Part shown: in pieces, positions 9,027 through 59,918 of the stretch
Position numbering within the stretch: the stretch's first letter is position 1
How the letters are laid out: the number at the start of each line of letters is the position of its first letter
From: Diadema antillarum
Taxonomy: Eukaryota
Direction: 5' to 3'
Length of the DNA stretch: 64,000 nucleotides
Assembly: GCF_040938485.1 (NCBI RefSeq)
Contig: NW_027271245.1
Coordinates: 62,001 to 126,000, forward strand
Position numbers and translations under genes: made by a program
The notes under the pieces: generated by a model
Told to the model about the DNA's origin: nothing
What the model saw: only the letters and a program-made list of their open reading frames with translations
Database searches by the model: none

Positions 9027-9595
9027 CTACCACCAACGCTGCAGGCAATATCGGTAGAAACTGTACGGGGCTTTCCAAAATGGCACAATATACCAAGGAC
9101 TTGGGCTGCCTTCCACCTTTGTGCTGAGCATAGCTATTGCTCGAGCTCTGTCACCTCGGTACTCATGAAAGATCCATCTTACCCAAGGCAGAAGAGCCAT
9201 AGGCGGGAGAGATGTGCCACAAATGAAAATAACCCTCAACAGCAAATGCATGGTGCTGCTGCAAGACCTAGTCAAACCGCCTACCAAGCTGATGCAGAAA
9301 AAGACAGCTGCTGCAAAAAGATACCATGGCTGCAAGAAAGAGGTTTGCTTCAATGGGGTCACGTTGGTCACAAACGACACCAAGCTCTCCCAGTCCTCAG
9401 GATCCATCTCCCAGTTTGCACCAAGTCTTCCACACACCATGGCCAGAGACGAGCAAGCAAAGGTTGTAGGCTGCTGGTTCCTAAAGGTTGTCATCTGGCT
9501 CCTCTTCTTCTGACTGCGGCTGATACCTGACTGAGCATCCTCCTTGGAGAGAGGCCAAGAGAAGTCATGTCCAATCACTGCCACGTTTTGTTTGC
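9027..9595 (-). CDS. Paralogue P1 coding exon B (joined to 10807-11065; 275 aa): domain C-half plus hydrophobic tail
   Basis: Acceptor TGAAG|GC; GKQNVAVIGHDF...QQPTTF...CGRL homologous to the other five copies; phase matches exon A. Confidence 0.85.
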
Positions 9596-10806
9596 CTTCA
9601 CAAGGATTAGAAGGGAATGAAATTTTAAGAAAATTTGATATCAGTATGAAGAAGAGAATAACATATGGAACAGGGAAAGAAATCTAGTAATAATGATCAA
9701 GCTTCTGGCATTTCCCTATGACACAGACTGTTCCTATCAACCTGAAACTTTTGAGACATGTCTGACATATAAAAACATTCTGCGCAAAAAAAAAAAAAAA
9801 AAAAAACTTGATTCCAATCACTGTAATGTCATATTTTATGGAAAATTGTAAAGCGGCAAGGGGTAGATTACAATGTCATTGTTGGAAATCTACACAAATT
9901 AAATTACTACTGTAAAGTAATACCAGAGCAAGCAATATGTTCTGACCTGGATTGTTAGAATTCTTTATGTGGTACATCTACAAGGCATTGATAAACTGCT
10001 TCAGTCAATAAATGATATTCAGTAATTCCATGCTTTGCTACTGTATACAGTACTTGAGTAATTCAGAAGGGAAAAGTAGCACATTTCCCTGGTATATTTG
10101 CAAAAACTTTGATACAGCACAACAACTCAGGTTTATTTTTGGTTTGTAAGTTTTTATTCCTCAGTACATTAGATGTCCTTCAATGTGATAATGGGGAAAG
10201 AAAAACATGGATCAACTATATAGAGGAAATAGCTTGACTCCAGCTCTGTATGATCTGCTGAGTCACTGTATGAATTTTGGGCTTCGACAAGCAGACAAGC
10301 TGTCATAGGCACCTTCAAATGCATCAATCCAAATTGGTTTGTCATGTCCAACCCTCAAACTACACCAATCAAGCAGTTCCCAATGTACACACAGGTATTC
10401 CCTACAGAACACATACAAGCATGTAGCAACAATAATTAAAGCTCTATCCCTTCTATTTCCAGTTAATGCAAAACAAACACCAGATGCAGGACAATGAATA
10501 CTATATAAGCCATCATTTTTGCGAGGGTTTAATTTCTGTGAATCACTGCTGGACCGCAAATTTAACAACATGCAAAAATGTCGCCCATGCACTGGTTTAA
10601 CAGTGCACTTAAGACGACTTTGTGTCAATTTACGAAAACAGCATCTTGCGAAAAATGTCCATGACCTCCTAATTTGCAAAAATATCTGCACTCAAAAATT
10701 ACAGCTTATACAGTATTGTAATCCCTATGCATTGCTCACTTCAGCCTTTGGCTTAAAGCACATATTTTATTCATGGGCACAAACTTTGACTTATGCTACA
10801 ACTGAC

Positions 10807-11065
10807 CAATGGTATGTTCGGCATGTGGCAGGAACTTGTTGTAGAGGGCATCTGTGACATCTGTTATCGCAAAACGACGATTGTGGATGGAGTGACAGAG
10901 GATGATTCCATGCAGGCGCCCTTTTGGCAGTCGAAACTTGTCCACGTCATTGTACGGCAGCTCGACAAATACGGCTTCTACTTTAGGAATTCTGTTCAGT
11001 CTTGAGAGCAGCCCACTGACATTATCCTGCCTGGCAGATGAGCAGACCCCAATTATTGTTGACAT
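10807..11065 (-). CDS. Paralogue P1 coding exon A
   Basis: ATG at 11065 just after TGCAG|G; MSTIIGVCS...LPY...ILCHSIHNRRFAITDV; donor G|GTCAGT, phase 1. Confidence 0.85.
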
Positions 11066-11195
11066 CCTGCAGACGGTGACTGAAGCTTCTGTGGAAGATA
11101 AGTATCAATTTGTCACTTCATGTAAGAAATGAGACAAACTACCTGTGAGACACAGACTAACTAATCTCTGCCATTTCACAGTCAAAATCACAGTA

Positions 11196-11386
11196 CAGTG
11201 GACTCCTGCTATAACGAAGTCTTCAGGACCAGCAGTTTTCTAGTGTTATATCAAAGTTTTGTTTTATCTGAACGAATAAACAATAAAAAAGAAACACTGA
11301 GCAGATAATGTTGTGGCCTGAATTTCTACTTTGTTGTAACCGGAATTTCATCATTCTAACCGTGTTCCTATAATGGGAGAGGACTG
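11196..11386 (+). mobile_element. Tc1/pogo-like MITE (TA-flanked)
   Basis: TA|CAGTGGACTCC...GAGAGGACTG|TA; same family as 62215-62399 and 62418-62594. Confidence 0.75.
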
Positions 11387-12551
11387 TATTAGCTCATATC
11401 TATTACCCGCATTCAGTGAGCCTTTTGCATATTGATAAGGCATTCCTGTTCCGTATATTCATTCACTGCTTCTTCAAGTCAACAATTTGTGTTTCAATGT
11501 CTGCATTTTTATAAGTATTATCTTCAGTTGTTGTCTAATTTTGTCAAAACATCCAGCAACAACAAAGACTAAATTACACACATACATCACTGTTACTGCC
11601 TTCGTGACTTTGAATTTTCCAAACAAAATGACTATTTGCTGCTGAAGCATTGTTTTTGAGGAACAGTTTCATTAATTTTTGTGAAGATTTTCATATTCAG
11701 CTACTCTAAAGTCATGTGGCCATAATGGATATTTGTGTTAACCTTTTAAGCAGCACTATATACACTGAATAGATAACTTCAAAACTGCACTTTCTATCAA
11801 TTTACAGTGATATAGGTCATTCCCTATAAACATGTAATTGTCAGTTCACGTACTAAGAACACAGTCTTGCTTACAACTGCACCACTAGATAGACTAGGCA
11901 GAGTTAGAATGTGCGGTAAAAAAAAAATCATAATATTACATTCATCCACATCTTACCTGGTTGCATATAACTGCATCAAAAAACTTTAAAAAGAACATTT
12001 TTGTCATTGAATATAGGTTAATTTCAGAATATTTGGTGTTTTCTAATTAGTATTAAGTACTTAGTAACATGTAACTCTGTTGAAAGTTACTGTGTAACTC
12101 CAAAGTTTGGAAGCTGCAAATTAAGTATAAGTCACACACTTTTCACATTATTTTTTTTTTAATGTAGACCCACATTTTGTTCCATCTGAAAGATTCCACC
12201 CATGGATGACACTTGTGTCAGTGTGCATGACAAAACTAAGCTGTAAGAACAGTCAGCTGTTTATGAGTTGCTATGCTACTTTGACATAAGAATGTTCTTA
12301 CATTTATAAATGTGAACAGATTCAAACACATCACTACTAAACAGTGGTTGTCATCTCTCCAGGTGGCTCAGTGCTCTGCCTGGTGCTCTTAAGAGACTCT
12401 TGTCTTAACTTCAATCCCCTTTTCTGCGTCATATCTCAAGAGTAGCATTCCTAGTAAATCCTAACATTACAAGTTTATTTTTTCATCACTTATCATTTCT
12501 TCATCATACACTTAAAGGCCAAGAGTTACCTTTTTCAGGAGATGGCCTTAA

Positions 12552-12939
12552 AGGGACTGTACAGTACTGGTTGAGATGAGAATTCAGCTTAAAGTGACGT
12601 CTTGCGAGATATTTAGAAACCACTCTATGACATGGTACAATTCTACGGCGAGTCAAAAGTTTATTTGATGAAAATCAGTTTTGAAATGACTGATAAATCT
12701 AAAATCAAGGAAAAACAAAGAGATCCTAATAAAAGTCGTGGCCTGTCAATGTTATCAGGATCACTTTTTTATATCTCAGCTATTTGAAGGCCAATTTTCA
12801 TCAAATAAATATTGAATCCTTCTTAAAATTACATGCTCTTTCATATTCTGTAAGAGGTTTCTCATTATCTCACACATACACAAAAAAGTTATAAACCTGA
12901 ATCCTCACCTCAACCAGTAGGCAGTACTGTACTGTCCCT
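12552..12939. mobile_element. Kolobok-like MITE
   Basis: TTAA on both sides; TIRs AGGGACTGTACAGTACTGGTTGAG / CTCAACCAGTAGGCAGTACTGTACTGTCCCT; purine-purine 5' terminus. Confidence 0.8.
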
Positions 12940-26892: not shown

Positions 26893-27668
26893 CAGAGCTA
26901 CCAAGTCTCACGCATTCTGCGTGAGACTAAAGCATTTAGGGGGCCGTCTCACGATCTCACGCATGGCACCCATTTTTCTCACGCATCGGGCGAAGTCCGC
27001 AACTTGGGCCTATAATAATGAGCATAGCTCAAAAGATTATAGTGATAGTTGCAAATGAAGGCATATTTCCCTTTTGTCTTTCGCAAAATAAGTAAAAAAA
27101 TGGTCACTTAAAGGGGATGGCTAGGAGGGGTCCTAAACCGATCAGTGGGAATCAGTGGGAATGCTGAGGGATGATTGTTCCAATCCTTGTGGGATTCATT
27201 TAAGAGTACATTATATATCTACTGTTGTGTGAAAATTATTTGCTTCAGAACGGTCTCATATTCAAGTAATGTGCAGATTAATACCCCATCACTGACCAGG
27301 CACACTAACCTGGAAACATTAAAACTGCACTTTACTTGATTATGAGACCATTCTGAAGCAAATAATTTTCACACAACAATAGATATATAATGTACTCTTA
27401 AATGAATCCCACAAGGATTGGAACAAATCATCCTCCAGCATTCCCACGGATTCCTACTGATCAGTTACTAGCCATCCTCTTTAAGTATGCACCTGATTGC
27501 ACCATTAAGAGCTCAAAATTGAAAAATCTCGACCGTGGGAGGCCACGGGGGGGGGGGGGGGGAAAGAAACCCCTCCCACACCCTCGCTCGCGCACACATT
27601 CGCATGCCGAGATGCCGAGTCATGAAAATCTCACTCATACAATTTTTTTTTTGAACTTGGCATCACTG
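26893..27668. mobile_element. DNA transposon-like insertion with 6-bp target-site duplication (CGTGAG)
   Basis: TIRs CAGAGCTACCAAGT / ACTTGGCATCACTG; CGTGAG at 26887-26892 and 27669-27674; single empty site in P4 at 29660-29665. Confidence 0.8.
27112..27480. mobile_element. Palindromic Kolobok-like MITE nested in 26893-27668
   Basis: TTAA|AGGGGATGGCTAG...CTAGCCATCCTCT|TTAA; arms complementary over ~165 bp. Confidence 0.85.
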
Positions 27669-27817: not shown

Positions 27818-28265
27818 GGAAGAACAACGTGGCTGTGATCGTGTATGATTTCCCATGGCACACACACAAAGGGGAGTGAAGAGAGAAGCTCCATCCATCG
27901 TGTTCGCATGGGACAGCTTCCGTATCAAACAGCCCGCCACCTTCGAGTGTAGCAAGCTGGCGATCACCTGTGGCAGGCTGGATTCCACGCTGGAGATTGA
28001 CATCGAGGACAGAGAGAACTTGGCGGTGTTTCTACAGAATGTCCAGCTCCGCACCCGCGAGCCCCGCAAACGCAAGTCTTTACTTGAAGTCTTGTTTCTT
28101 GGTGGAGTGGGAGCACTCTTTCTTGCAGCTTCTTATATCCTGTGCACACGCATCCTGTACAAGCTTAAGACCTTCTTTTTTGAAGAAATTGTTCCTCGTT
28201 GGAGCAGGCTCATCAACACACCGGTCTTAATTTGTAATATAAGTAGTCTGTTAGATTGCAGTTAA
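27818..28265 (+). pseudogene. Paralogue P3 exon B (two +1 insertions relative to P4)
   Basis: Acceptor TTGTAG|GG; NVAVIVYDFPW then frame breaks at AAAGGGGAGTGA and ATGGGACAGC; resumes FRIKQPATF...CGRLD...LLEVLFLGGVGALFLAASYILC. Confidence 0.75.
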
Positions 28266-29044: not shown

Positions 29045-29336
29045 ATGGCCCTGGCAATACTCTTCGATACGAAGGCCGTGATAGGCGTGTGCGATTCAGG
29101 ACAGGAATCCAGCATCAAAAATTTGCTCCATGAACTCCGAGATCTTTCGTCTAGGAGTGGTGGCGAAGTGAGATTCATCCAGCTACCATACAGCGACCTG
29201 GACAGCTTTGAGCTGGCACGTGGCACAGTGGATGGAATTATTCTCTGTCACTCCATCCACAATCGCCGTTTCTCCATCACCGATGTCGATGATGCCCTGT
29301 ACGATAAGTTTCTGCCTTGCATGGCAGAGACTTATG
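29045..29336 (+). CDS. Paralogue P4 coding exon A
   Basis: MALAILFDTKAVIGVCDS...ILCHSIHNRRFSITDV; donor G|GTGAGT, phase 1. Confidence 0.8.
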
Positions 29337-29801: not shown

Positions 29802-30286
29802 GGAAGAACAACGTGGCTGTGATCGTGTATGATTTCCCATGGCACACACACAGAGGAAGTGAAGAGAGGAGCTCCATCCATCATGTTCGCATGGCCACCT
29901 TCCGTATCAAACAGCCCACCACCTTCGAGTGTAGCAAGCTGGCGATCACCTGTGGCAGGCTGGATACCACGCTGGAGATTGACATCGAGGACAGAGAGAA
30001 CTTGGCCGTGTTTGTGCAGAATGTCCAGCCCCGCAGACGCCTGTCTTTACTTAAAGTCTTGTTAATTCTTGGTGGAGCTGGAGCGCTCATTCATGCAGCT
30101 CTGAAGTTGAAGACCTTTGTTGAAAAAATTGTTCCTGCTTTGAGCAGGCTCATCAACACAGCGGGCTTACTTTATAATACAAGTAGTCTGTTAGATCAGG
30201 GAGGAGCACCTCCCAGGTTAGATAACAATTGGATTTCATTTTTCTATCCATTCCCAGACATGTCCATCTTTAGGCCACCATGGTAA
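29802..30286 (+). CDS. Paralogue P4 coding exon B (258 aa in total), hydrophobic helix in tail
   Basis: Acceptor CTGTAG|GG; GKNNVAVIVYDFPW...KQPTTF...CGRLD...LSLLKVLLILGGAGALIHAAL. Confidence 0.85.
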
Positions 30287-34599: not shown

Positions 34600-35160
34600 C
34601 TCAGTCGTAGTAGTAGTGGTAGTAGTAGCGGTAGTAGTAGTTGTAGTCGTAGTATAGTAGCAGAGATCAAATAACAAGTTTGGTCTTTTATGTCTTAAAA
34701 TAACCGTTGCTGTATGCCAGTAACAGAAGAGTAACAGAAGAACATGCTGGCTCAAATTTTCCTACTGTCTCTGTTCTGCCATGGACGTCACTGCCCGTTG
34801 GCGATCACTGATGCAGTAAGCCTCCTCCAGCTTCCCTGTCGTGCGAGTGATGTATGTAATGACGATGCTCTCTCGCCAGCTATCCCAGCCATTGTGGAAA
34901 GGATCGCGAGTCGTTGTCGTCCACGTGATCTCTTTCCATTTACAAATCCAGTCAGGACTATGATGTTCCGTTTGCCTTTTCCGCGCGACGTGACCCCAAA
35001 AAACTGCATCTGGCGTTTCCTGATGGTCGAGAGCAGCTCACGTTCAGCCGACACCATTTCTAACACTTATGTGTTTGATTTTATCATTGTCCATGATATT
35101 CTCAACATTCTCCTGTATAGCACCACATCTCAAAACTTTCTATTCTGTGTCTCTTCGCTT
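34600..35160 (-). mobile_element. 5'-truncated RTE-clade LINE
   Basis: ORF 34788-35066: IRKRQMQFFG...GFVNGKRSRGRQR typical of RTE C-termini; 3' (ACT)n-like tail. Confidence 0.75.
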
Positions 35161-38569: not shown

Positions 38570-40450
38570 CTTATCTGTCGCTTGTCATGTATCAAAAATT
38601 TTTGAAAAGCAGATTAAAGATCAGTTATTGGCATATCTTCAGCAAAATGATTTGATTAACATAGATCAAGCTGCATTCTTGCCCCATCACTCAACTAACA
38701 CTTGTCTCCATCGAGCTGTTGATGATTGGTTGGAGTCTTTTAACGATCGTGAAGTAGTTGCAGCATGTTTTCTTGATATTTCTAAGTGTTTCGATTCAAT
38801 TGATCATACGTTATTATTGCATAAGTTGGAATGTTATGGCATCAAGGGCAAACAATTGAAATGGTTTTCTGATTATTTAACTGGTAGGAGTCAAAATGTT
38901 TTTTGTCATGGTCATCTCTCAACATCTGAAAGTATCACGACAGGGGTACCACAAGGGAGTGTACTTGGGCCTATACTTTTCCTCATATTTATTAATGATA
39001 TTTCCGAATCTGTATATTCATCTTCCTGTAATGTATTCGCAGATGATGTAGTAATTTATTGTTCGCACAAAGATACTGATATAGTTACATCAGTGTTGCA
39101 AAATGATCTGAACTCGATATATAGATGGTACAAGAGAAACAGATTAAGTATTAATTTAGATAAGACTAAGGTAATGTTATTAAGTCCACGGTGCTCCAAA
39201 AGTTTGAACATTTTTCTTGATGGAAAAAGGATTGAACAGGTTCATGATTTTAGGTATTTGGGTGTTATAATAGACGACCATCTTCATTGGGATGCACACG
39301 TACAAAATTTAGCCAAATCTATTTCTATGAAATTATTTATGTTACGAAAAATGAACCAATTTTTGGATAAAGATTCACTTTAACTTTTGTATACTGCAGT
39401 TGTTCAACCGTGTATTGATTATTCATGCTCCGTTTGGGGAAATTGCTCTGCTAAAAATAGAAATATTCTATATCGATTACAAAAGAGGGCAGCACGAATT
39501 ATCACATCAAATTTTGATTACGAAACTGCAAATGGGAATGACATAATCAAGGTTTTGAATTTGCAAGCATTTGAAAATAGAAGGAATTATTTTTTGTCAA
39601 CGCTCATGTATAAATGCATCCATGGACTTGCCCCCACCCGAATGTGCAATAATATTGAGATGATTTTTTGACAGGCATGGGTTTAATACAAGAGCAGCTG
39701 ATTCTTTGAATGTGGTACCACCTAAACCGAATGTAGAGTGTTTTAAAAGCTGTTTTAGATATGCAGGAGGAAAAGGTATGGAACTCACTACCAAATGTTT
39801 TAAAGAAATCAAAGTCATTGTCAGCTTTTAAGTTGTTATATAAGAAAATGTATTTTCACTGATTTTATCAAACGCCCTGTTTTTACATAATATGTACCAT
39901 ATTATTTTTTGTCACACTGTGTTACCCACACTTGCCTGGTGCAAATTATGTGTGCATGAATCCCTGAATGTGTGTTATGGGTATACATGCATTCGACTGT
40001 TTAGGTTAAACGGGCATGACTGCCAGATTGCATGTAATCTATTTATTAGTGTAGATTTTTACATAGAATTTCTATCTGCTTTTTATGATCGTGGGCTTGT
40101 TGATTCAAGTCCTTTCTGGCAGAGTTTTTACATTCCTTTTGTACACTAAATGGTATGATTGTGTATATAATCTTGCATCATTTTATTCACTGTTTTAATA
40201 TATTCTTTTGTATCATATTGTTTCATTATATTATACCTAGACTGGTTACTACTGATTTCAATTTAACGTATATTGCTCCTTTCAGCTCTGATTGCTTGTT
40301 TAATTGTAGTGGTTTTTATGCTTACATTTATGTAACATGATTTTTGTATTTATATAGTTGGATTGTACAGGACCTTGATGTAAAACAGCATTCACTTGCT
40401 GATCTTGTTATCCTGTCAAAATATGTTGAAATAAAATAAAATAATAAAAT
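38570..40450 (+). mobile_element. 5'-truncated CR1/L2-clade LINE (disrupted RT)
   Basis: ORFs 38628-39383 and 39387-39671 carry FLDISKCFD, GVPQGSVLGP, FADD and YLG motifs; one in-frame TAA and a later frameshift; AAAT-rich tail at ~40430-40453. Confidence 0.9.

Positions 40451-40645: not shown

Positions 40646-40720
<75 letters not shown>
40646..40720. repeat. Compound (TA)n(TG)n microsatellite
   Basis: Direct inspection. Confidence 0.95.
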
Positions 40721-40721
<1 letters not shown>

Positions 40722-41898: not shown

Positions 41899-42154
41899 AT
41901 GGTGATTGTCGGGGTTTGCTCGTCCTCGGGGCGGGAGAGCATTCGGGCCTTCCAATCACAGCTACGATCCGAACAAGAAGTGGTGGTCAAGTTCATAGAG
42001 CTGCCTTACAACAACCTCGACGCATATCGCCTCAAACGAGACTGCGCGGACAAAGTCATCCTGTGTCACTCCATCCACAATCGGAGATTCGCCATCACAG
42101 ATGTAGTGGACTCTCTCTACGACAAATTCTTGAATCACGCTAAAGGCACCTTTG
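41899..42154 (+). CDS. Paralogue P5 coding exon A
   Basis: MVIVGVCSS...LPYNNLD...VILCHSIHNRRFAITDV; donor G|GTATGA, phase 1. Confidence 0.85.
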
Positions 42155-42189
42155 GTATGACGTTATACTCTTCTCGGGCGATTTTAAAT

Positions 42190-42741: not shown

Positions 42742-43064
42742 GAAAAGAAAATGTAGCCGTGATAGCCCATGATTTCCCCCAACCAGAGAGCGGGGATGGC
42801 GAAGCACGCAAACGACTGACGAAAGTGCGAATGGCCAGCTTCCACATCAAGCAACCGACCACTTTCCAATGCACCGACCTGGCGTTGACATGTGGCAAGC
42901 TGGATACAGTGGTAGATATTGACAATGGCGATTGGCTTCAAGTCAAGAGATTTTTGACACGGAGTCGACAGACTGGCGGAGATTTGTCCTCCTCTTCAAC
43001 CGTCATCATCCAAATTTATAAAGATAACATTGCTTTGGCGTCATACCCACCAGACAATTTATGA
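42742..43064 (+). CDS. Paralogue P5 coding exon B (192 aa in total), short non-hydrophobic tail
   Basis: Acceptor TATAG|GA; GKENVAVIAHDFP...KQPTTF...CGKLD. Confidence 0.85.
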
Positions 43065-43614: not shown

Positions 43615-44850
43615 GATTTGGATTTTGGATTTATTTATTCAATACTCCATAAAAACCATACAAACAAACAGAGAAAATACACTACATATAAGTACAAATA
43701 CATTACATTTAAATTCATGTCGTCAAATTTGTATAAAATAACTGATATGACTGCAACGGATACAAAATATAAACGTCAACATAAGAAATCATGAAGCATT
43801 AGGAACTTGACAGGAAGGCGGTGCCCTATATGAAGCCAAGTCCTTTAACATGTACCAAACGAATATCATATATATTACAAAGTTACAAACAGCAGCATAA
43901 AAAAAAAACATAGACACACAAACACATTAAACAAAAAGTTTATGTATAGTCTTATCAAAAATATTTTCTATGATACATTTATTCTAAAGATTGTCTGTCA
44001 CTTAAATACTGCTTAAGATGGGTTTTAAAAATCGTAAAAGTCTGACTTAACTTTATTTCCTCTGGTAACTCATTCCATATTTTCGGTCCATTATAAAATA
44101 TTGACTTTTGATACGAGCTTAATCTTACAAATGGCAAGTGATAATTAAAAATGTTTCTTGTTATACATGTATGTACCTGGCTATTGAGCTTAAAGTAATT
44201 AGTTAATACTCCAGGAAGCATATTATGAGAACATGAAAACATAAATATTGCACTTTGATATATATACATATTATAAATATTAAGAATTTTCAGACGATCA
44301 AATATTGTATGAGCACGGTAATCGCTATGAGATACAATTCTGATTGCTTTCTTTTGTAATTTTAAAAGCCTCAACATATTTTGTTCACTACAGTTTGCCC
44401 AGATTTGTATACAATAATTCAAATAAGGCAGAATTAGAGAATTATACAATAACAATAAAACTTCTTTTGGATACGAATGAAATCTATACAATAAACCAAT
44501 ATTTTTTGAAAGTTTGTTGCAGACAACATCAGTGTGCTGGTTCCAAGACAATTTTTCATCAATTATTACACCCAAAAACTTAACATATGGAACACATTTA
44601 ATAAATACATCATTGATTTTAATGTAAACAAAATCATTGTGTACTTTTTTGTTTGAAAATAACATAAAATTTTTTTATTTATATTAAGAACAAGCTTATT
44701 TATATCTAACCAATAAACTAGCTTTTTTAATTCACTTGCAAATTGTTCCTGTAATATTTGTATATCAGAATTGGACATGAACACACTGGTGTCATCTGCA
44801 TATAGAATAAACTTTAAACAATCAGACACATTACATATATCATTAATATA
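43615..44850 (-). mobile_element. 5'-truncated L2/CR1-clade LINE (frameshifted RT C-half)
   Basis: ORFs 44566-44829 (LYADD) and 43979-44665 (KFLGV...LILPYLNYC...GPKIWNELP); AATAAATAAAT tail at ~43620-43640. Confidence 0.85.
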
Positions 44851-47599: not shown

Positions 47600-50500
47600 A
47601 TAATAATAATAATAATAATAGATATCATTTATAAAGCGCTTATTACAATGTTTCTAAGTGCTGAAGAAAAATTAGGAAAGATGAATTCAGTTATGGAGTA
47701 TATACAAATTGTAATACGATGAAACACAATACAAAATACATAGAAAAAAACATTGTAAGTTATAACTTATAAAACAAACTTAACATTTATGCAGACTGTA
47801 TATAATAAATCAATACAAATTACATAATGTAACGACAACAAATGGAGCCGGGACTCGCAATGTTGGTTACTGGTGTTCGTTTTTATTCGCAGGTTCTGAT
47901 CGTCAAAACCAAACCCAAGCAAGCCCCCTGCCGGAGACGAAGATAGCTGACTCTCACGAATTCTGCTCACAATATGTCTCGATGCTTTCCCGTTGTCAAA
48001 GATTCCAATATGAAGTGAGGAGAGGAAAACTTTCTCTATTTATTGGGTTTAGGACCCTTCCCAAAGATATATTTTAACTTTAAATTCCAATCCACCGACG
48101 CACAGTTCTACGTCACTTTTACTGCCACTTTGTTTGGGTGGAGGGCTATGTCTGGCTATGAGGTCATAGCTTGACCCAAGGAGGGCAGAGAGTGGACATT
48201 ATGCCCAAGTTTGGCAAGTAAAAGTGGAGAATGTGACCGGAAGGATTGGACTTCCTGAATGACGCAGGGTGACTCATTTTCCAGAAAATATATTTTTATG
48301 TTACTTTTTGTTTTGAATTTTTGGTTCTCAGAAATCTTTCTTTCTCTTTGTTTCGACAAAAACCACAATGTTACATTCTCCCCTGCTTCATGTTGGCATC
48401 CCTGACAACATACCACAAACATAATTATTTAATATTAATTAATGATACACTTAATTTCTACCTGAAAGTAGAGTAAGGAGTAGCAAGTGCGACTTGCTAA
48501 CATCCGCCAAAATCTCTTCAGTTACGGTTGGCGGCGCCTTTCCCTGCAGCCTAGCCGAACGCCTTGGGAGTGGAGCTGACTCCAGTCCATCTTCCGGGCG
48601 CTCCCCTGCTTTTTCCAAAGCAGGGAGGTCGTCCTCCCTCGCGGTGGCTGCCTCGCCATCATCTGTAACTGATAGGCCTACATGGTCACTGTCGTTCCGT
48701 GGTTGACGTCTGGGTTGTCATCTATACACGACTGCTCTGGGGACGTCAGGGCTCCTAAGCTATCTCCAGGTTCTCCGTCATCGCGTCTGGGCATCATCCT
48801 CAATATCTAATTGAGGCCAGAGGAGGAACCACACGCATCCTCGTACAACAGCATTACACTCGCCAGATGAATAGGGATTGCCTGAAAATAGTTCCAGAAG
48901 ACCAGTCGGCGTCCTTGAAGCTAGATGTCGCTGTTGCTGAAGTCTACCATCTGGACAGGAACTCTTCCCGAGGAGGGCACCCTTACGAAAGTAGGTAAGA
49001 GAACGAGTCCATTTGGTAATGTTGAGGCATCCCACTCCTCAACAACTGCGACTGAACGCTTGCTTCCTTACAGTTGAATAGACACGGCCAGAAACCATGA
49101 ACGTGACCGTTCTTCCACTGGTTCCGCCTTCAGCTTACTTCCGTTCAACACCTCGATTTCTGCTGATTTCTCCATCATGTCTCCGGCGAGGGGGCTGTCG
49201 ATGACCAGTGAACTGCGATCCTGTCCGTGACGCCAATTTTTTGTAACGACAACAAATGGAGCCGGGACTCGCAATGTTGGTTACTGGTGTTCGTTTTTAT
49301 TCGCAGGTTCTGATCGTCAAAACCAAACCCAAGCAAGCCCCCTGCCGGAGACGAAGATAGCTGACTCTCACGAATTCTGCTCACAATATGTCTCGATGCT
49401 TTCCCGTTGTCAAAGATTCCAATATGAAGTGAGGAGAGGAAAACTTTCTCTATTTATTGGGTTTAGGACCCTTCCCAAAGATATATTTTAACTTTAAATT
49501 CCAATCCACCGACGCACAGTTCTACGTCACTTTTACTGCCACTTTGTTTGGGTGGAGGGCTATGTCTGGCTATGAGGTCATAGCTTGACCCAAGGAGGGC
49601 AGAGAGTGGACATTATGCCCAAATTTGGCAAGTAAAAGTGGAAAATGTGACCGGAAGGATTGGACTTCCTGAATGACGCAGGGTGACTCATTTTCCAGAA
49701 AATATATTTTTATGTTACTTTTTGTTTTGAATTTTTGGTTCTCAGAAATCTTTCTTTCTCTTTGTTTCGACAAAAACCACAATGTTACAATAACATGAGA
49801 GAACAGATGAGATTTCAGTACTGTTTTGAAGGAGTCTACTGTTGGAGCTTCACGGACGTGGATGGGCAAGTTGTTCCAGAGTGTAGGTGCGATTACACTG
49901 AAGGCGCGGTTGCCATAACGAGTACGGGTGCGCGGTGCCGATGTGAGTTGAAGATGTGCAGTGGAGTGAGAACGAAGGCGTCTGGTTGTTGAGGAAGAAG
50001 ATATAGTCCGGAGGGAAACCAGATGATGAAGATAGGATATGATGCTACGTTGTGGACAATCTTGTAGGTGAGGAGTAGAACTTTGAAGATAATGCGGTCA
50101 TGAATTTGTAGCCAGTGCAGTGATTTGATGACAGGTGTGATATGTTCATGCTTCTTCTACGGTGCGTGTGATGAGACGTTCAGAGGTGTTCTGGATGCGT
50201 TGTAGCGGAGCAAGACAGGAGCGAGGAAGACCAGCTAGGAGGCTGTTGCAATAGTCCAAGTGTGAAAACACAAATGCATGTACCAGCTTTTCTGTAGTTG
50301 GCTCATTAAGGAATCTCCCTATTTTCCCAATTCTAACAATGCCAAAAGAAGCCGATCTGCAGACATTTCGAATTTGGTTAGTGAGAATGAGATGCTTATC
50401 GAGAGTAACACCGAGATCCCTCACACCGTCAGAGGAAAAAACGCATTCTCCAGCCATATCCAAAGAAGGTTGAAATCCCGGTTGCTGCCTAAACTGGGAT

Positions 50501-50650
50501 GAGATGAACAACAGCTCAGTTTTGGCTTCATTCAGTTTGAGATGGTTGCGGGAAGACCATGATATCGCTCACTCATACAAGTTTGGTCAGGCGGAAATGC
50601 CAACATGCTCCTTATTACATCTCTTTGGCGAGAGTTGCATGATATGTTGC
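47600..50650 (-). mobile_element. L2-type LINE 3' fragment split by the LTR element
   Basis: RT C-terminus at 49790-50650 (DLGVTLD...SHLDYCNSLLAGLP...TVDSFKTVLKSHLF); 3' UTR and (ATT)n tail at 47600-47827. Confidence 0.75.
47828..49789 (-). mobile_element. Non-autonomous (TRIM-like/internally deleted) LTR retrotransposon, probably Ty3/gypsy-type
   Basis: 548-bp LTRs (47828-48375, 49242-49789) bounded by TGTAAC...GTTACA; ATAA target-site duplication; PBS TGGCGTCACGGACAGGAT (49218-49235); polypurine tract AAGCAGGGGAGAA next to the 3' LTR. Confidence 0.9.
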
Positions 50651-51526: not shown

Positions 51527-51571
<45 letters not shown>

Positions 51572-52049
51572 ATCATATAACCTCATTCTCAACTATTTCT
51601 TGTTATATGTAACAACATGCGCCCTTTCAACAAAATGCGGACGACAGTATTGATGATTTTATCAATAATAAGTAAGCTTGAATTGCGAGATTTTTGTACA
51701 TATTATTACAGCAAATCCCCATGTACGACAACATTCTACAGTAGTCATGGTAATAATTATAATCCTTTGTCTTCTGTTTTCAAGGAAACATTTCAATATG
51801 AACGTAGAATATGATTTTCATATAACAGAAATTTAGGAATCACGTCTACAGACAGAACACTATAGGATCATAAAACGTCACAGAAATTACTCTTTTCCGG
51901 CCTTGTGTATAGTGACTTTCTAGTGTAAAAGGGTAAATGCTTTGATTAGGCAAAAATTACGTTTTGTTCTATGATTATGACATATAATATATAACATATA
52001 ATGAATAATATATAACATATAACATAATATGATATATAATATACAATAT

Positions 52050-55000
52050 TGCCCACTGCCCACTGCCCAGTGGGCAGTGGGCAGGTCCTTCTGGTCCTGT
52101 ACGGGTAGTGAGACGTCCCCGCCCTCCACGAGTCTCCCGCTGCCTTGCGGGCAGTTTTTTGGTTAATCAAAGGCTAGGGAGTAAACCTTATCCAAATCCG
52201 GAGCGGAGCCCCTAAGGCGGTTAGGTGTTGCAGCTTCATCATCTCTCCGGCAGCTCCTACAGTCCAGTTGTGGCTAGGATGTGTCGCCCTGCGTCCCTCC
52301 TGGCTAGATCAGCTGGACCGAGAGGGGGGTCCTGGGCTTGGGCAACCCAAGGCCTCCACAGTTCTTCTCGCCCAGGATTCAGTGACTCCACCCTCCATCT
52401 CTTCTCTTCTTCTCCCAAGTCCTGAGGCGATGGGCGAGTGGCGACGGTAGCAGGTGCAAGATGGCGCTGGGAGCTTCTAGCCATGGACCTACACTCAGGC
52501 GGTCAGGGCAAGGATGGTCGTTCTACAACCTACCGGGGCAAGGGCATAGTTCGGCAGCCACTCTGACGACGGAGCAGCCCTTTTCAGGGACAGCACTGCT
52601 CCCCCCTCATGGGGAAGGGTCTAGAAAAGGTGACCTAAAAAAAGCTTGCCTCATCTCCATCCTGTCAGCATACCGCAGCTGACTGGACATCTACCACGCG
52701 GTCGAAATACAAGAGAAACACGAAAGACGAACTCAAAATCATCCCGCCGGAAAAGCACCTTATGTGTTGGAGCCTGGAACATCAGGACACTCATGGATAA
52801 CCAAAACTGTGACAGACCAGAACGTCGAACAGCACTTGTAGGTCGAGAACTGCTGAGATACAGCATCGATATTGCTGCCCTCAGCGAGACACGCCTTGCA
52901 GACACTGGGGAGATCACCGAGGCTGGAGCTGGATACACTTTCTTCTGGTCGGGAAAGGCACTAAATGAACGCAGGGAGGCAGGAGTTGGTTTTGCCATTC
53001 GCACCACCCTCGTCAAGAACCTGGGGTCCCTCCCAAGGGGTATCAGCGACCGCCTGATGGTGATAAGAATCCCTCTCCATGGCAAGACGCACTTGTCACT
53101 CATCAGTGTGTACGCCCCCACCATGACCTATACTCTGGAGGAGAAAGAGCTGTTCTATCAGAACCTCTCCAAAGTGCTGCGGTCAGTTCCTAAAGACGAC
53201 AAGCTGCTGATACTAGGGGACTTCAATGCCCGGGTGGGTAGAGATGCCCAGTCTTGGCCAGATGTCATTGGGCCACATGGCACTGGCCATGAGAACACCA
53301 ACGGCCAACTGCTACTCACCCTCTGTGCTGAACATGGACTCACCATCACCAATACCCTGTTCCAACTGCCAGACATCCACAAAACTACCTGGATGCACCC
53401 AAGATCCAAGCACTGGCACTTGATTGATTATGTGATCACCAGGCGCCGAGACATCCAGGATGTTCGCATCACAAGAGCAATGAGGGGAGCTGACTGCTGG
53501 ACAGACCACCTGCTGCTGAGGTGCAAACTGTCCTTTTCCATTGTCAGCAGGCATAGACGTCAGAAATCTGACGTTAAAAAGAAAATGGATGTCCAGAAGC
53601 TAAATGAACCAAACACAAAAGAAGCCCTCATCACCAACCTTGCAAACCAGCTTGAACATCTACCAGCAGAGGAAGACTACGAGAAGGCCTGGGCCAACTT
53701 CCGGGATGTGGTGTATGACTCTGCCAGTCTGACTCTTGGATATATGACAAGGAAACACCAAGACTGGTTCGACAACAACAACAAGGAGATCACCACCCTC
53801 CTCCAGGAGAAGAAAGAAGCCTTTACAGCCTGGCTCAATGACAAAGACTCCCAAGCGAAGCGTGACCGCCTCAAGAACATCAGAGGAAAGGTGCAGACCG
53901 AGCTGCGACAGATGAAAGACAAGTGGTGGGAGAACAAGGCTGCAGAACTACAGCAGTACGCAGACGAGCACAACTCAAAGAAATTCTTTGCCAGCCTGAA
54001 GGATGTGTATGGCTCCACGCCAAATGCAATGGCACCTGTGCGCTCTGCCAATGGAACCCTGCTTACTGAGAAAAGCAACATCATACAGCGTTGGAGCGAA
54101 CACTTCAGCCAGCTACTAAACAGACCTTCTCAGATCGACCAGCAGGCCATTCAAGATATGCCACAGCGCCCAGTCCTGACCTTCCTTGATGACCCCCCAA
54201 TGTTGGCAGAAACCCTGAAGGCAATCAAGCAACTACATGCGGGGAAAGCACCTGGTCCTGACGGAATACCCCCAGAGATCTTCAGAGAGGGAGGTGCAGC
54301 CATTGCCATCAAGCTGACCGAGCTGATACAGCAATTCTGGGAAGAAGGATCGGTGCCGCAGGACTTCAAGGATGCCAACATTGTGCATCTGTACAAGAAC
54401 AAAGGGGACAGAGCTTCATGTGACAACCACCGGGGCATATCACTATTGAGCATCGCAGGAAAGATTATGGCCCGTGTTGTTCTGAACCGCATCTCACACC
54501 ATCTGCTGGACGACGTGGTCTCTGAGAGCCAGTGTGGATTTAGGAGCAACAGGGGGACAATAGACATGATCTTCGCATTACGGCAGCTACAAGAGAAGTG
54601 CCGAGAACAAAACCAGAACTTATACATCCTCTTCGTAGATCTGACGAAGGCTTTTGACACTGTCAGCCGTGAGGGTCTGTGGGCTATCTTGACCAAGCTG
54701 GGCTGCCCTCCTAAGTTTGTCAGGATCATCCAGTCCTTTCATGATGGCATGATGGCTCGCATTGTGGCAAACGGAGATATCTCTGACCCATTCCCAGTCT
54801 CCAATGGTGTAAAGCAAGGCTGTGTGATGGCTCCTACACTCTTCAGCCTCATGTTTGCTACCATGCTCTTCTGTGCCCTCTCCAAGTGTGATGCTGGTGT
54901 CAGTATTCGGTACAGATGTGATGGCCGATTCTTTGACCTTAGACGTCTGAAGGCAAAGACCAAAGTCCTGAAGGCCCTTGTGAGAGACTTCCTGTTTGCA

Positions 55001-55956
55001 GACGATTGTGCGCTTGCAGCATTGAATGAACCAGACCTCTCAGAACTTGCCACTTGTTTTGCAGAAGCAGCAAAAGCCTTTGGACTGACCATCAGCCTGC
55101 AAAAAACAGAAGTGATGCTCCAGCCTGCACCTGGCCTGTCACCTCCTGAGCCTCAGATCGAGATCGAGGGCACAAAACTGAACAACGTGGAGAGCTTCAC
55201 ATACCTGGGAAGCTGCCTGTCTTCAAACTGCAGCATGGACAAGGAAGTCTCCAAGAGGCTCGCAAAAGCAGGAACTTCGTTTGGCAGACTTTGGACACGT
55301 GTGTGGGGTGAACGAGGCATCAGGCTTTCTACCAAGCTGGCAGTCTACAAGGCAGTCGTCGTCACATCCCTGCTCTATGGCTGTGAGACATGGACGCTGT
55401 ATAGGAGGCAAAACCGTGCACTTGACCAGTTCCACCTCCGCTGCCTGCGACGAATCATGGGAATTTCCTGGCAGGATAGAGTCTCAAACACTGAGGTGCT
55501 TCGCAGAGCCAAAATGTCTGGGATCGAGGCCCTCATCATGAAGGCCCAGCTCCGATGGGTCGGACATGTTGTCCGAATGGATGATACTCGTCTACCAAAG
55601 ATGATCTTCTTCTCCGAGCTGGCTTCTGGAGCAAGGAGCATTGGAAGGCCCCTGAAGCGGTACAAAGACAGTCTGAAAACTTCCCTTGTTGCCTGTGGCA
55701 TCTCAGCCCGTGACTGGCAGTCGCTTGCCTCTGACCGCACCGTCTGGCGCCCAGCTGTCCAAAGGGGTGCAAGACTGTTTGAGGAGAAGCGCCTCAGGAG
55801 CTTGGACCAGAAGCGAAAAGCCCGCAAAGAGAGGATCACGGACCCTACTTCTGCTGTGGCATGCCCAACATGTGGCCGCGTCTGTGCGTCCGCCTTTGGG
55901 CTCCGCTCCCACCTCCGGCGTCACTGACGTCATTGTCGAACCCGACAGACTTCCAT
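52050..55956 (+). mobile_element. Full-length RTE-clade non-LTR retrotransposon
   Basis: 10-bp target-site duplication TATACAATAT (52040-52049, 55957-55966); GC-rich 5' leader; single long ORF; short 3' UTR. Confidence 0.9.
52646..55927 (+). CDS. RTE polyprotein: AP endonuclease, reverse transcriptase and C-terminal Cys/His finger
   Basis: Uninterrupted 1093 codons: GAWNIRTL, ALSETR, LGDFNARVG, TDH, QCGFR, FVDLTKAFD, GVKQGC, LFADD, YLG, CPTC...HLRRH. The listed start is TTG, not ATG. Confidence 0.95.
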   Translation: MPHLHPVSIPQLTGHLPRGRNTRETRKTNSKSSRRKSTLCVGAWNIRTLMDNQNCDRPERRTALVGRELLRYSIDIAALSETRLADTGEITEAGAGYTFFWSGKALNERREAGVGFAIRTTLVKNLGSLPRGISDRLMVIRIPLHGKTHLSLISVYAPTMTYTLEEKELFYQNLSKVLRSVPKDDKLLILGDFNARVGRDAQSWPDVIGPHGTGHENTNGQLLLTLCAEHGLTITNTLFQLPDIHKTTWMHPRSKHWHLIDYVITRRRDIQDVRITRAMRGADCWTDHLLLRCKLSFSIVSRHRRQKSDVKKKMDVQKLNEPNTKEALITNLANQLEHLPAEEDYEKAWANFRDVVYDSASLTLGYMTRKHQDWFDNNNKEITTLLQEKKEAFTAWLNDKDSQAKRDRLKNIRGKVQTELRQMKDKWWENKAAELQQYADEHNSKKFFASLKDVYGSTPNAMAPVRSANGTLLTEKSNIIQRWSEHFSQLLNRPSQIDQQAIQDMPQRPVLTFLDDPPMLAETLKAIKQLHAGKAPGPDGIPPEIFREGGAAIAIKLTELIQQFWEEGSVPQDFKDANIVHLYKNKGDRASCDNHRGISLLSIAGKIMARVVLNRISHHLLDDVVSESQCGFRSNRGTIDMIFALRQLQEKCREQNQNLYILFVDLTKAFDTVSREGLWAILTKLGCPPKFVRIIQSFHDGMMARIVANGDISDPFPVSNGVKQGCVMAPTLFSLMFATMLFCALSKCDAGVSIRYRCDGRFFDLRRLKAKTKVLKALVRDFLFADDCALAALNEPDLSELATCFAEAAKAFGLTISLQKTEVMLQPAPGLSPPEPQIEIEGTKLNNVESFTYLGSCLSSNCSMDKEVSKRLAKAGTSFGRLWTRVWGERGIRLSTKLAVYKAVVVTSLLYGCETWTLYRRQNRALDQFHLRCLRRIMGISWQDRVSNTEVLRRAKMSGIEALIMKAQLRWVGHVVRMDDTRLPKMIFFSELASGARSIGRPLKRYKDSLKTSLVACGISARDWQSLASDRTVWRPAVQRGARLFEEKRLRSLDQKRKARKERITDPTSAVACPTCGRVCASAFGLRSHLRRH

Positions 55957-56676
55957 TATACAATATATCTGTATGCAATTATATTTGTAAGATCACAACT
56001 ACTGATCTACAGTATATATTTCAACAAACATGTCGGAAAAGGGAAACAAACCAAATACGTCTCTACGGAATCGCTGATGGAGACAAATCATGAAAATCCT
56101 TCAAATCAAATCTTTATCTATAGATGCTATAATAACCTCGCTTCATTCAAGATTATGTTTGTACATATACATGTATATAAACTTTTTTGAGGATGGTTCG
56201 ATGTGCTGCACTTGCACTGCTTTTTCATTTTAAGTTTTTTTTTTTTCATGCATGCATGGGTGTTCATTTCTTTATCATTATTATTATTTTTTTGTTGGGG
56301 GGGGGGGAGGGAAGTCTTTTTAAGAGCCCTCCACCTCCCCCCCCCCCCCCCCCACCCCCCACTCCCCTGGCATTGTCCTACATGTTGGATGAATCATAAA
56401 TCATAATTCATGGCTTTAAAAAGCAAATGTACAGTGCTGAGTAATCACACTCATCGAATAGGATTCTGGAGGGGATTTCAATATCTATTTCAATTACAGT
56501 GTATGTTTAATGTGTACTAGTATTTATTCAAAAAGCAAAAAAGCAAAAAGGTTAAGTTGAACCGCTGAACAGAGCCAGCGACAGAATGCCTGGTCATGTG
56601 CCTTTCCCATAGACACTTTCGCCACTGTTGAGACCCTTTGCCAGTGCATACTAGTACTATACATGTATGTGGTGGT

Positions 56677-57133
56677 GGAGAATCCCCGTCGTGCGGCAGG
56701 AAATTCCTTGCCGACATACGAAACTATCACATGCTATTTACGTGCAGTTCAGCGGTCGATACATGCTTCATATCTCATGAATGTGACTTTCAAAAATTAT
56801 GTCATTGTCGCCCCGTATAGAAAGGCAAACATTTTCAGTAGCTGCAGAGGGGTAAAGTACATGGATCAAACGACGCTACTTGTGTTGAATGCAGAGTGAA
56901 TGCAGAGCTTCAGAAGCCAGAGCAAAAGCCAGGCCAGGGTCTCGGCAGGGAGTCATATACAAAACTCGTCATCATCTCCGACTTCGTCAGTTGTCTTTGA
57001 CGTGCATTACATTTGATATCGTATTTCGTCGAAATCGTGGATCGCTGTCCCTTAATCTCGCCAGCCAGCTACCAGAGACCTAGCAGCAGTTACAAGATAC
57101 AGTGTGCAAACTCTCTTCAGAAGAGCAGTCAAG
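56677..57133 (+). promoter_or_regulatory. P6 putative kB sites (GGAGAATCCCC 56677-56687; GGAAATTCC 56699-56707) and non-coding first exon (donor AAG|GTAAAT at 57134)
   Basis: Minus-strand GGGATTCTCC fits GGGRNWYYCC; acceptor TAACAG at 57931 precedes the P6 ATG. Confidence 0.55.
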
Positions 57134-57959
57134 GTAAATAGTGAAGAATGCGTGTATGCTTGCACTTACACTTTTCAGATCATGATGGGCATCAACAAAC
57201 CACATAAAGGTCTCTTCCATAAGTATATACTAGTATGCCACATTTTGGTGGTCATCTTCTTAAAAGTAAAGGGTGCTTGAAAAGCAGACGTTTGGTTCGG
57301 CCTTTGTATTATGATATATAGCTGTAGCAAAGTTTTGTTCGTTCGGGTATACAAATATATGTTTCAACTTTGAAAAACATTCATATAGTTTGGTGATCAA
57401 TTCTCATAGCTAGATTCTACAGAATCATATTAGAATTGCGAAAAAAAAATCGTGCTCTGACTTCAATGAAGTGTTTTGATGGTGATATATTTTTAGAATT
57501 CAACTTTCTATTAAAGCACCATGCAGACACACACTGCAGGGAAACCATGACTGATATCCTGGAATTCTAAGATATGTATAAAGTCATGATTTTCTGGTGT
57601 TTACATTATGAGACAGCATGATCAAGGAAAGAGATGGCTGATTTCTGTTAGGAATATTGGTAGAGCCAAAAGAAGTTGCCATGAGCTTATCATGATCGAT
57701 TCAGGGACCATTTGACCAGTGCCAATGTGCAGCCATTCATTTACATGCTGGAAGAGTATGGACACAGATAGATTTTAAGGACAGAAAAAGAAGCATTCAT
57801 TTGAATTAGAAAAAGTTTTAAACTCTTCAAAAGTAAATCAAGTCCATCTCTTCTTTTGTAGTACATATCATTGTCCTGGGAGCACAATTCCTTTTTACAT
57901 GTATTTTTTTTTTTATTGTCTGCTGTAACAGAACTATCCAAGGAACAAGGTCTCCCATC

Positions 57960-58224
57960 ATGGGTGTAATAGGCGTATGCAGTTCTGGACCAGAATCCAG
58001 CATCAACCGTTTGCTACGTGTGCTCCGAGATCTTTCATCCAGGAGCGGCGATGAAGTGAGATTCATCCAGCTACCATACAACGACCTGGACAGCTTTAAG
58101 CTGGCACGTGGCACAGTGGATGGAATCGTTCTCTGTCACTCTATCCACAATCGCCGTTTTTCCATCACTGATGTTGATGATGCCCTGTACGATAAGTTTC
58201 TACCTCGCATGGCAGAGACTTTTG
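57960..58224 (+). CDS. Paralogue P6 coding exon A
   Basis: MGVIGVCSS...DGIVLCHSIHNRRFSITDV; donor G|GTGAGC, phase 1. Confidence 0.9.
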
Positions 58225-58800
58225 GTGAGCAAATCAGTTTGATGTGTGATACAATTACTGTCACAGTAGTTTCACATTATTTTCTCTAAGGACAGACGAA
58301 ATTATGAATCTTGTTGCCATATTTTTCTTAGTCTATTTCTGCTATTGGTCGATGACAACAACAAAAAAGAATCGAATAGTTTCAAAATGAAAATTTAGAT
58401 TCTTCCAGATTTCAGGTGATTGCTGTTGAAATGTGGCATTAAAAAGAAAACATTGAGTTTTATAGTTACAAATTAGTGAATCAGTGTTGGGAAGAAGAAC
58501 TATAATATAATATAGAGAAATAGTGGTATTAAACTTGCATGATTGTTCTTATATTAATCCCCCTCTCTCTCTATCTATCTATCTATCTCTCCATCTCATT
58601 TTCTACCTATTCTCCCTTGATTAATAATAATGATGATGATAGTAATAATACTAAAATATATATAACTATATATATTATATAACTTATAAGTGCCTAATAC
58701 TGATGTTACTAAGTGCAACAATATGGAAAATATTAAATCAAAATACAGCATTATGTACATACAATAACACTCTAATCCACCCATATTCCCCGCTCTGCAG

Positions 58801-59918
58801 GAAGAGAAAATGTCGCTGTGATAGCTCATGACTTTCCATGGCCATCAAATGAGAACCTGCACACCCAGGTCCAGGAGGCTCGCATGGCAAGCTTCCGCAT
58901 CAAGCAGCCAACCACCTTTGATAGCTCCGCCCTGGTCCTCACCAGTGGTAGGATGGATGCCATCTTACAGATGGATGTGGGTGACCTGGAGAAGCTAGAG
59001 AGGTTTGTCACCAATCTGCGCATGGCTACCACTCACTTCAAGGTCACAGAACTCCCAGGGATTATGTGTGAATCTGCATGGAACCTTTCTCAACAAATGA
59101 TTGAGATTCTCCTGATCATTTTGTTTATGTTGCATCCTCCTTTGCGGCAGGGGATGTTCTTTCTGTTTGCTAACATTACCCTCTCGCTGATGCTTATCTG
59201 CACCAAGCTGAAGGATGTTGTTTCATCACCCATCATGCCACTTTCAGTACAGCGCTGGTCTCTGACATACAGCAACTCCCTGAAGACGGCCTGTCATGAT
59301 ATGAAGAAATCTGGGAGCAAAATCTGTGCTTCAGTTACATCCTATTCCAAAGCCTTTGCTAATGGTGTGTGGTGCCGTCTGCCAATCAGCTTGGTCAATT
59401 CTGGTAAGAAAGGGAGATCATATCTTTTTGGATCTCTTTCAGCTTACTACACCACTGTTAAGAACTATGTTAAGGACTGTGCTGGTTGGCTGTATGGGAT
59501 GATCAAATCATTGTCAATCCCAAAAGAGTGGGTACAGAACAGTTGTAATGCAGTGTATACAATTTACATCGGCATCAATGAGTTTGTGTGGATGATGTAC
59601 TCAATGATACCATCACATGTCACTGTAAAGGAGTGTTTCAGATCATATTTGTCATTCACTGCATGGGAGATACAGAGAGGCAATGGGTCTAGCCTTCTGA
59701 CATCAGTAACCATAGCAACAGGATGGCTGAAGACCAAACTACAGACCTGCCTGTACCTGTCCCTGTGGCTTGCTCGTCTTCCGTTCTTGATACCATGGTA
59801 TGTGGCAGCTGCGTGCTACAATACCACACACAACATGGTGCATTATCTTTACAGAATGAAGAGGGCCTGTTTTACTATGATATCTTATCAGTCTACAAAG
59901 AGCAAAGGATGCAACTAG
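58801..59918 (+). CDS. Paralogue P6 coding exon B (460 aa in total), long tail with several hydrophobic segments
   Basis: Acceptor CTGCAG|GA; GRENVAVIAHDFPW...KQPTTF...SGRMD; 1.1-kb open frame. Confidence 0.9.

Follow-up and report, generated by a model that had tools for sequence, protein, structure and literature searches.

Which protein family do the repeated two-exon genes in this part of the genome of the sea urchin Diadema antillarum encode, and how old is that family? The sequence analyzed (contig NW_027271245.1, positions 62,001 to 126,000) is 64,000 nucleotides long and is referred to here, at its full length, as the window; it is AT-rich and eukaryotic and carries several retroelement open reading frames (ORFs). 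The first-pass annotation of the window had described six two-exon genes in tandem with a phase-1 intron at the same glycine, and had read their common core as a divergent TIR-like domain with a role in innate immunity. We conclude with high confidence that the window holds six clustered paralogues of an undescribed ancient deuterostome family, of which five are intact genes and one is a pseudogene. The earlier observation is confirmed with corrections, and its interpretation is partly supported.

Six paralogues in the window

A six-frame motif scan combined with splice-site mapping placed exactly six loci of the family in the window (c1 to c6, Table 1). No further copy or fragment was found when the whole window was searched by tblastn with the family proteins, so the copy number originally given stands. 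The similarity is far above chance (tblastn E 1e-39 to 1e-129). The minus strand carries c1 and c2 and the plus strand c3, c4, c5 and c6; the stop codon of c1 lies at position 9027 and that of c6 at 59918. The six paralogues are neighbors, as their description as a tandem array implied, but the array is not uniformly head-to-tail and contains only one recent tandem duplication, the pair c3/c4, with 90-93% nucleotide identity over ~2.7 kb. The remaining pairs of copies share 43-69% protein identity over the core.

Exon 1 starts with an ATG directly upstream of the first strand (M-x-V-I-G-V-C) and codes for strand 1 to helix 3 of the domain, while exon 2 codes for strand 4 to helix 5 and then for a variable tail. 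In five of the six copies exon 1 ends in G before the donor GT and exon 2 opens with G(A/G/C) after the acceptor AG, and the intron is therefore in phase 1 within a Gly codon. The spliced coding sequences of these five copies are open, and the junctions in the NCBI gene models of c4, c5 and c6 (P0001, P0016 and P0005) are identical to those that we mapped. The claim of a shared phase-1 intron thus holds for five genes and fails for c3, a pseudogene in which one extra T upstream of the donor moves the splice junction into phase 2 and, in exon 2, the insertion of 1 bp at about 27870 produces an in-frame stop. The NCBI model of c3 (P0002) bypasses the damaged stretch. The c3 intron measures ~1.26 kb, compared with 465 bp in its recent duplicate c4, an enlargement explained in part by a ~330-bp palindromic element (27136-27466) that resembles a miniature inverted-repeat transposable element and matches its own reverse complement at 87%.

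Several copies could be tied to annotated proteins. In c4 the ancestral start codon is now AAG, and an upstream ATG, at which the NCBI model P0001 begins, adds the ten residues MALAILFDTK (29045-29075). P0001 is 99% identical to c4 and their domain rows in the tree alignment are the same; c4 exon 2 used as a query retrieved Diadema antillarum proteins with 97% identity over the match. Copy c5 is 100% identical to P0016. The annotated proteins closest to c1 are P0019 (94%) and P0011 (85%), with P0017 as its relative in D. setosum, and the nearest annotated protein retrieved for c2 has at most 46% identity. Copy c6 matches P0005 at 98.6% over 295 amino acids (aa) and its D. setosum orthologue P0004 at 86.5% over 430 aa, a length which indicates that the long tail of c6 is conserved. 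Overall, D. setosum orthologues of the window copies show 71-87% identity.

Table 1. Positions and products of the family loci in the window.
Feature	Position	Strand	Product or remark
c1	exon 1 11065..10807; exon 2 9595..9027	-	275 aa, intact; N-terminal domain followed by two hydrophobic segments
c2	exon 1 22556..22301; exon 2 19648..19242	-	220 aa, intact; hydrophobic segment near C-terminus
c3	exon 1 26295..~26560; exon 2 27818..28265	+	pseudogene
c4	exon 1 29045..29336; exon 2 29802..30286	+	258 aa as a two-exon model; one hydrophobic segment
possible alternative third exon of c4	34950..35060	+	P0001 residues 236-272, 100% identity (tblastn)
c5	exon 1 41899..42154; exon 2 42742..43064	+	192 aa, intact; without hydrophobic tail
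c6	exon 1 57960..58224; exon 2 58801..59918	+	460 aa, intact; long C-terminal extension with hydrophobic segment

Predicted fold and structural neighbors

The spliced proteins have in common an alpha/beta core of ~165 aa, which begins at or near the initiator Met. AlphaFold models were obtained for an urchin domain, using 30 homologues (predicted local distance difference test score, pLDDT, 86.9; predicted template-modeling score, pTM, 0.84), and for a frog domain, using 99 homologues (pLDDT 82.6). In the urchin model a strand (residues 12-17), a helix (21-36) and a second strand (41-46) are followed by a 17-residue connection that begins with LPY. Next come a strand (64-70), a 13-residue loop (CHSIHNRRFSITDV) modeled in part at low confidence, a helix (84-97), a strand (102-107), helices (117-141), a strand (144-147) and a final helix (159-170). 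The frog model displays the complete five-fold beta-alpha pattern, including a helix between strands 2 and 3. From the two models we predict with high confidence a flavodoxin-like domain, a beta-alpha sandwich of five strands, in the general class that also includes TIR domains, CheY receivers and small-GTPase cores. The alternating strands and helices that had been noted over ~150 aa are recovered in both of these independent models, and the motifs listed at that time (IGVC, LPY, LCHS, LYxxFL, VAVIxHDF, QPTTF, CG and DxxxLxxF) are all present and lie on strands and helices of the urchin model.

In Foldseek comparisons against the PDB, the urchin model matched flavodoxins and WrbA (template-modeling scores 0.37-0.5), and the frog model matched TIR domains at ranks 1, 2, 4, 6, 8, 9 and 10 with E ~1e-3, among them TIR-STING, BtpA/TcpB, a cryptic TIR, SIGIRR and BtTir. 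The models could be aligned nearly completely to both TIR and CheY chains at ~3-3.5 Å. Searching the Atlas by shape gave Flavodoxin_5 and CAP12/Pycsar-type TIR for the urchin model and CAP12/Pycsar TIR, DUF4062 and receivers for the frog model, while the best Foldseek match in Swiss-Prot was CENP-M. Beyond the family's own clusters, the nearest named language-model neighbors of both urchin and frog queries were AIG1/GIMAP (0.61) and CENP-M (0.57-0.62); such scores of ~0.6 are far under the level of 0.9 at which the tool treats a neighbor as more than a lead.

Searches against named families

With respect to sequence, the family stands by itself. No Pfam match was obtained with the separate exons or with 10 full-length proteins, and no consistent one with 30 urchin domains at E <= 10 or with 99 frog proteins at E <= 1. 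Twenty mixed members matched nothing in PADLOC and NCBIfam, two family profiles found no meaningful match among the sequences of solved structures, and the C-terminal tails matched no Pfam family. The hidden Markov models (HMMs) for TIR, TIR_2, SEFIR and TIR-like domains gave no match at E <= 1-10 in the Pfam scans of the 30 urchin and 99 frog members or in the PADLOC scan of the 20 mixed members. The scans of members against Pfam yielded no confident named family, in agreement with the first-pass annotation, which could assign none. No description of the family was found in the literature by locus name or topic. What we have is a new sequence family inside a known fold class.

A few isolated matches were seen. 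The Flavodoxin_5 HMM matched one of the 30 urchin members (E = 0.11), and KAP_NTPase matched 6 of the 99 frog members weakly. A fusion to a KAP-family P-loop NTPase was considered and rejected for the two matches that were mapped: in P0198 and P0155 the match overlaps the domain itself, at the VVIDDLxD strand, and Walker A is lacking, so we attribute the match to a stretch that locally resembles a Walker B strand rather than to a fused NTPase. One chordate Atlas cluster near the family carries DUF4630/C2orf72 in 18% of its members; DUF4630 was not matched in any Pfam scan of the family, and the literature gives no function for it.

Distribution and evolution of the family

With the domain as query, 38 proteins of echinoids (Diadema, Strongylocentrotus and Lytechinus) were retrieved; each is named "uncharacterized" and lacks a Pfam domain. 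When 1.84 billion cluster representatives were searched with a profile, 461 reached E <= 1e-3 and 69 of these E <= 1e-30, and many of the 461 hold two to six copies of the domain. By name look-ups and a second profile search, the non-echinoid members retrieved were anuran, with more than 100 proteins from at least 20 genera, again all uncharacterized. The family appears to be absent from most other vertebrates sampled here, and clusters in AlphaFold DB include candidate members from elephant shark and from a small number of invertebrates, with rotifers and amphioxus among the animals indicated. No viral homologues were found.

Comparison of gene structures suggests how the urchin and frog members are related. 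Xenopus tropicalis (CM004451.2, L003 1205-22118) has three tandem paralogues within 23 kb, each encoding 203-208 aa in three exons. In the gene for P0277, exon 1 ends in CTA G before the donor GTAGGG and exon 2 opens with GG AAA after the acceptor CACAG, so that the first intron is in phase 1 and interrupts the codon of the same invariant Gly as in Diadema; the third and last exon encodes a C-terminal transmembrane tail anchor. Because intron position, phase and architecture agree between urchin and frog, vertical inheritance is indicated and the family is probably older than the split between echinoderms and chordates.

In the tree, frogs are separated from echinoids, which form two deep clades, and expansions took place separately in Diadema and in the camarodonts (Strongylocentrotus, Lytechinus). 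Copies c4 and c6 are sisters, c1 groups with a D. setosum protein, and c2 and c5 stand alone. The lineage-specific tandem expansion proposed earlier is thus seen both in the echinoid and frog arrays and in the clades of the tree. Together, the pseudogene, the recent duplicate and the lineage-specific clades point to birth-and-death evolution in tandem arrays.

Outside animals a single member was found, in Endozoicomonas elysicola, a gammaproteobacterial symbiont of a sea slug and the sole prokaryotic match among 185,579 species represented by one genome each. The encoded protein (P0082; L001 8001-8780, L002 6001-6468) has 259 aa and 36-39% identity. Its gene is solitary among unrelated neighbors, with an uninformative operon context, and the tree places it among the echinoids, on a long and weakly supported branch. 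This placement and the isolation of the gene suggest that the Endozoicomonas copy is probably of animal origin, captured by the bacterium.

Conserved residues and motif tests

Conservation was assessed across urchins, frogs and Endozoicomonas, with residues numbered as in P0001. H69, T79, Y86, L90, G98 (the Gly that holds the intron), V104 and Q135 are invariant, and L67, R75, V81, D83, V102 and D108 nearly so, which gives a family signature of approximately LxH(S/T)xxxxRxx(I/V)T(D/N)VxDxxYxxxL ... G ... VxV(I/V)x(H/D)D ... QP. His69 and Ser/Thr70 follow strand 3; Arg75, Thr79 and Asp83 are on the mobile loop and the start of the helix; Asp108 follows strand 4 and Gln135 is in helix 4. The conserved polar residues would accordingly gather at the C-terminal edge of the sheet, in one putative pocket. 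In this fold class the C-terminal edge of the sheet is the ligand-binding edge.

The signature was compared with the diagnostic motifs of the proteins that share the fold class. LPY, which had been assigned to the BB-loop position of TIR domains, does directly follow strand 2, but it occurs only in one echinoid clade and in Endozoicomonas, with LTQ/LTH in the second urchin clade and ISN/ITN in frogs, and hence it does not define the family. No Glu is invariant or near-invariant family-wide at the place of the TIR catalytic Glu; where frogs have the E of YDxEL, urchins have F. By sequence, Asp83 is the closest acidic residue that is conserved. The link between strand 1 and helix 1 comprises about three residues and varies in sequence (SGQ, TSA, SRS), and the phosphate-binding loop for flavin mononucleotide that flavodoxins have after strand 1 (S/T-x-T-G-x-T) is not conserved in the family. 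Walker A is absent from 281 of 284 proteins, with similar strings only in P0040, P0260 and the kinesin head of P0075. DxxG and NKxD are likewise absent among the family-wide conserved residues, the conserved positions being H-S/T and HD or DD, and by these motifs the domain could at most be a degenerate derivative of P-loop GTPases. Nor were CheY-type residues found: strand 1 is followed by a Ser/Thr-rich segment instead of the acidic pair of CheY, there is no conserved Lys after strand 5, and the end of strand 3, which bears the phospho-acceptor Asp in CheY, is followed by His-Ser/Thr in the family. A CX5R site of the phosphatase/rhodanese type, as urchin CHSxxNR might suggest, was rejected because its Cys is Tyr in frogs and Leu in the second urchin clade.

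Architecture and putative membrane anchors

Topology was surveyed in the 281 family proteins that begin with Met. The domain starts no more than 30 residues from the Met in 204 of them, and a hydrophobic segment lies ahead of it in just nine, for which reason the domain should face the cytosol. A strong hydrophobic segment is present beyond the last domain in 73 proteins, 34 of which have it within 35 residues of the C-terminus in the manner of a tail anchor. The window copies lack a signal peptide, and four of the five intact ones (c1, c2, c4 and c6) have a hydrophobic, membrane-anchor-like segment in the tail. In long frog proteins as many as five domains follow one another in tandem, and the signature is degraded in some of them.

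What the domain might be

Given the models, the domain may be TIR-like, a degenerate GTPase or a separate lineage; the last of these, or an enzyme of its own kind, takes what is left of our expectation after the minor shares given to TIR and GTPase. That the domain is a highly divergent member of the TIR (STIR) clan, serving innate immunity as a homotypic signaling adaptor or an enzyme that cleaves nicotinamide adenine dinucleotide, seems to us possible although unlikely. Like TIR domains (including CAP12/Pycsar and TIR-STING), the family has a cytosolic and often terminal domain of ~140-165 aa, predicted as a five-stranded parallel beta-alpha sandwich, and expands in tandem and by lineage. 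TIRs are among its top structural neighbors, with seven of the first ten PDB ranks for the frog model and CAP12/Pycsar clusters recurring with both models, and a Ser-x-Ser after strand 1 is loosely like TIR box 1. At the level of motifs the earlier TIR reading failed, however. None of the 149 members scanned has HMM-level similarity to TIR, the proline after strand 2 is missing in frogs and in the second urchin clade, a family-wide BB-loop Pro/Gly and an invariant Glu are both wanting, and the signature is unlike TIR boxes 1-3. What stood of that reading is the fold class, along with the lineage-specific tandem expansion.

Descent from AIG1/GIMAP or IRG-type immune GTPases, by which the domain would be a pseudo-GTPase without a P-loop and a membrane-tethered scaffold like CENP-M and IRGQ, we regard as unlikely to about the same degree. 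It draws on the Swiss-Prot match to CENP-M, on the named language-model neighbors and on one S. purpuratus relative that AlphaFold DB names 'AIG1-type G domain-containing'. GIMAPs, too, pair an N-terminal domain with a membrane anchor at the C-terminus and occur in tandem clusters. Yet compared with IRGQ, CENP-M and AIG1/GIMAP the family has no P-loop, no G3/G4 motif and no sequence-profile match, AIG1 and MMR_HSR1 HMMs included; its strand 1-helix 1 link is short, the language-model scores are low, and it has one beta-alpha unit fewer than Ras-like GTPases. The helix between strands 2 and 3 of the frog model is as in flavodoxin-like folds, and hhalign of the family profile against a neighboring S. 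purpuratus GTPase exon, a weak test with one exon, gave nothing. An enzyme of its own kind, for example a small-molecule hydrolase or phosphotransferase acting through His-Ser/Thr, Asp and Arg, is improbable in our view. H69, S/T70, R75, T79, D83, D108 and Q135, invariant or nearly so and located after strands 3 and 4, show the strict conservation between urchin and frog that is typical of catalytic or ligand-binding sites. On the other hand, Ser and Thr alternate, which speaks against Ser as a nucleophile, Cys is replaced in the CHS motif as described above, R, T and D are lost in several frog tandem copies (P0077 domains 4-5), and no known enzyme family was matched. It is very improbable that the loci are non-functional, as chance ORFs, pieces of transposable elements or relics of dead genes. 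Retroelements abound in the window and c3 is a pseudogene, but five copies retain open frames and canonical GT..AG junctions, orthologues persist in D. setosum, Xenopus homologues share the intron, the residues are strongly conserved and no similarity to reverse transcriptase or transposase was found in these loci.

The reading that we favor, with modest confidence, is that of an undescribed, ancient and fast-evolving deuterostome family whose domain would act in the cytosol, often tethered to a membrane, by binding a ligand or partner and so taking part in signaling, with a possible immune or conflict-related role. The domain would lie in the cytosol, often held at a membrane by a C-terminal hydrophobic segment, and its conserved polar pocket would bind either a small ligand, which may be phosphorylated or a nucleotide, or a partner, with binding through the pocket leading to signaling. 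We prefer this ligand- or partner-binding model because residues conserved from urchin to frog are predicted at the ligand-binding edge, and birth-and-death evolution in tandem arrays would point to immunity or conflict.

Several points weigh against the favored model. The clustering of the polar residues into a pocket is inferred from their secondary-structure positions after strands 3 and 4 and not from coordinates. A clear hydrophobic anchor is seen in about one quarter of the family proteins, and c5 is without one. Fusion partners are inconsistent: among 62 long frog models there were four with a kinesin motor, two with KAP_NTPase, two with AAA_16 and one with P2RX7_C, some of these fusions may be merged gene models, and the weak KAP_NTPase matches that were mapped coincide with the domain, as noted above. 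The suggested immune or conflict role would derive only from the pattern of family evolution, and the innate-immune role put forward in the first-pass annotation, likewise drawn from family dynamics alone, did not gain ground.

A more specific and speculative variant, which we also hold to be improbable, would make the family an unrecognized immune signaling or effector module of deuterostomes, related to TIR or derived from a pseudo-GTPase. Acting at intracellular membranes, it would use its pocket of His-Ser/Thr, Arg, Thr and Asp to bind or process a signal derived from a nucleotide, and the Endozoicomonas copy would be a captured host gene that interferes with that pathway.

The family merits definition and a structure, and nothing so far points to an unusual mechanism. 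It has hundreds of members unnamed in protein-family libraries, has been kept, as it seems, since before the echinoderm-chordate split, has grown into large tandem arrays in sea urchins and, independently, in frogs, and was apparently taken up once by an animal-associated bacterium. Families that behave in this way have often proved to be immune components. With a domain definition, several hundred "uncharacterized" proteins could be named, and structural and biochemical work would have a clear target. There may also be relevance to Diadema antillarum itself, a species known for disease-driven mass mortality.

Neighboring genes and other elements

In S. purpuratus, the gene adjoining the family member P0103 (L004 8773-9180, minus strand) has a first exon with the GTPase P-loop GRTGCGKSS and looks like an interferon-inducible-type (IRG-like) GTPase. 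That an IRG-like gene adjoins the family while IRGQ is the best structural match may be a coincidence.

Within the window, an intact ORF of 1093 aa at 52646-55927 (plus strand) belongs to a non-long-terminal-repeat retrotransposon with apurinic-type endonuclease and reverse transcriptase domains. The stretch is locally GC-rich (GC 0.53, versus ~0.37 elsewhere), and the element may have been active recently. Further ORFs lie amid the family genes at 38628-39671 (plus strand), 43979-44665 (minus strand) and 50146-50511 (minus strand). No Pfam family was matched by 39387-39668, 43982-44665 or 50149-50511, and 38628-39380 matched reverse transcriptase. The family cluster thus appears to be interspersed with retroelement debris.

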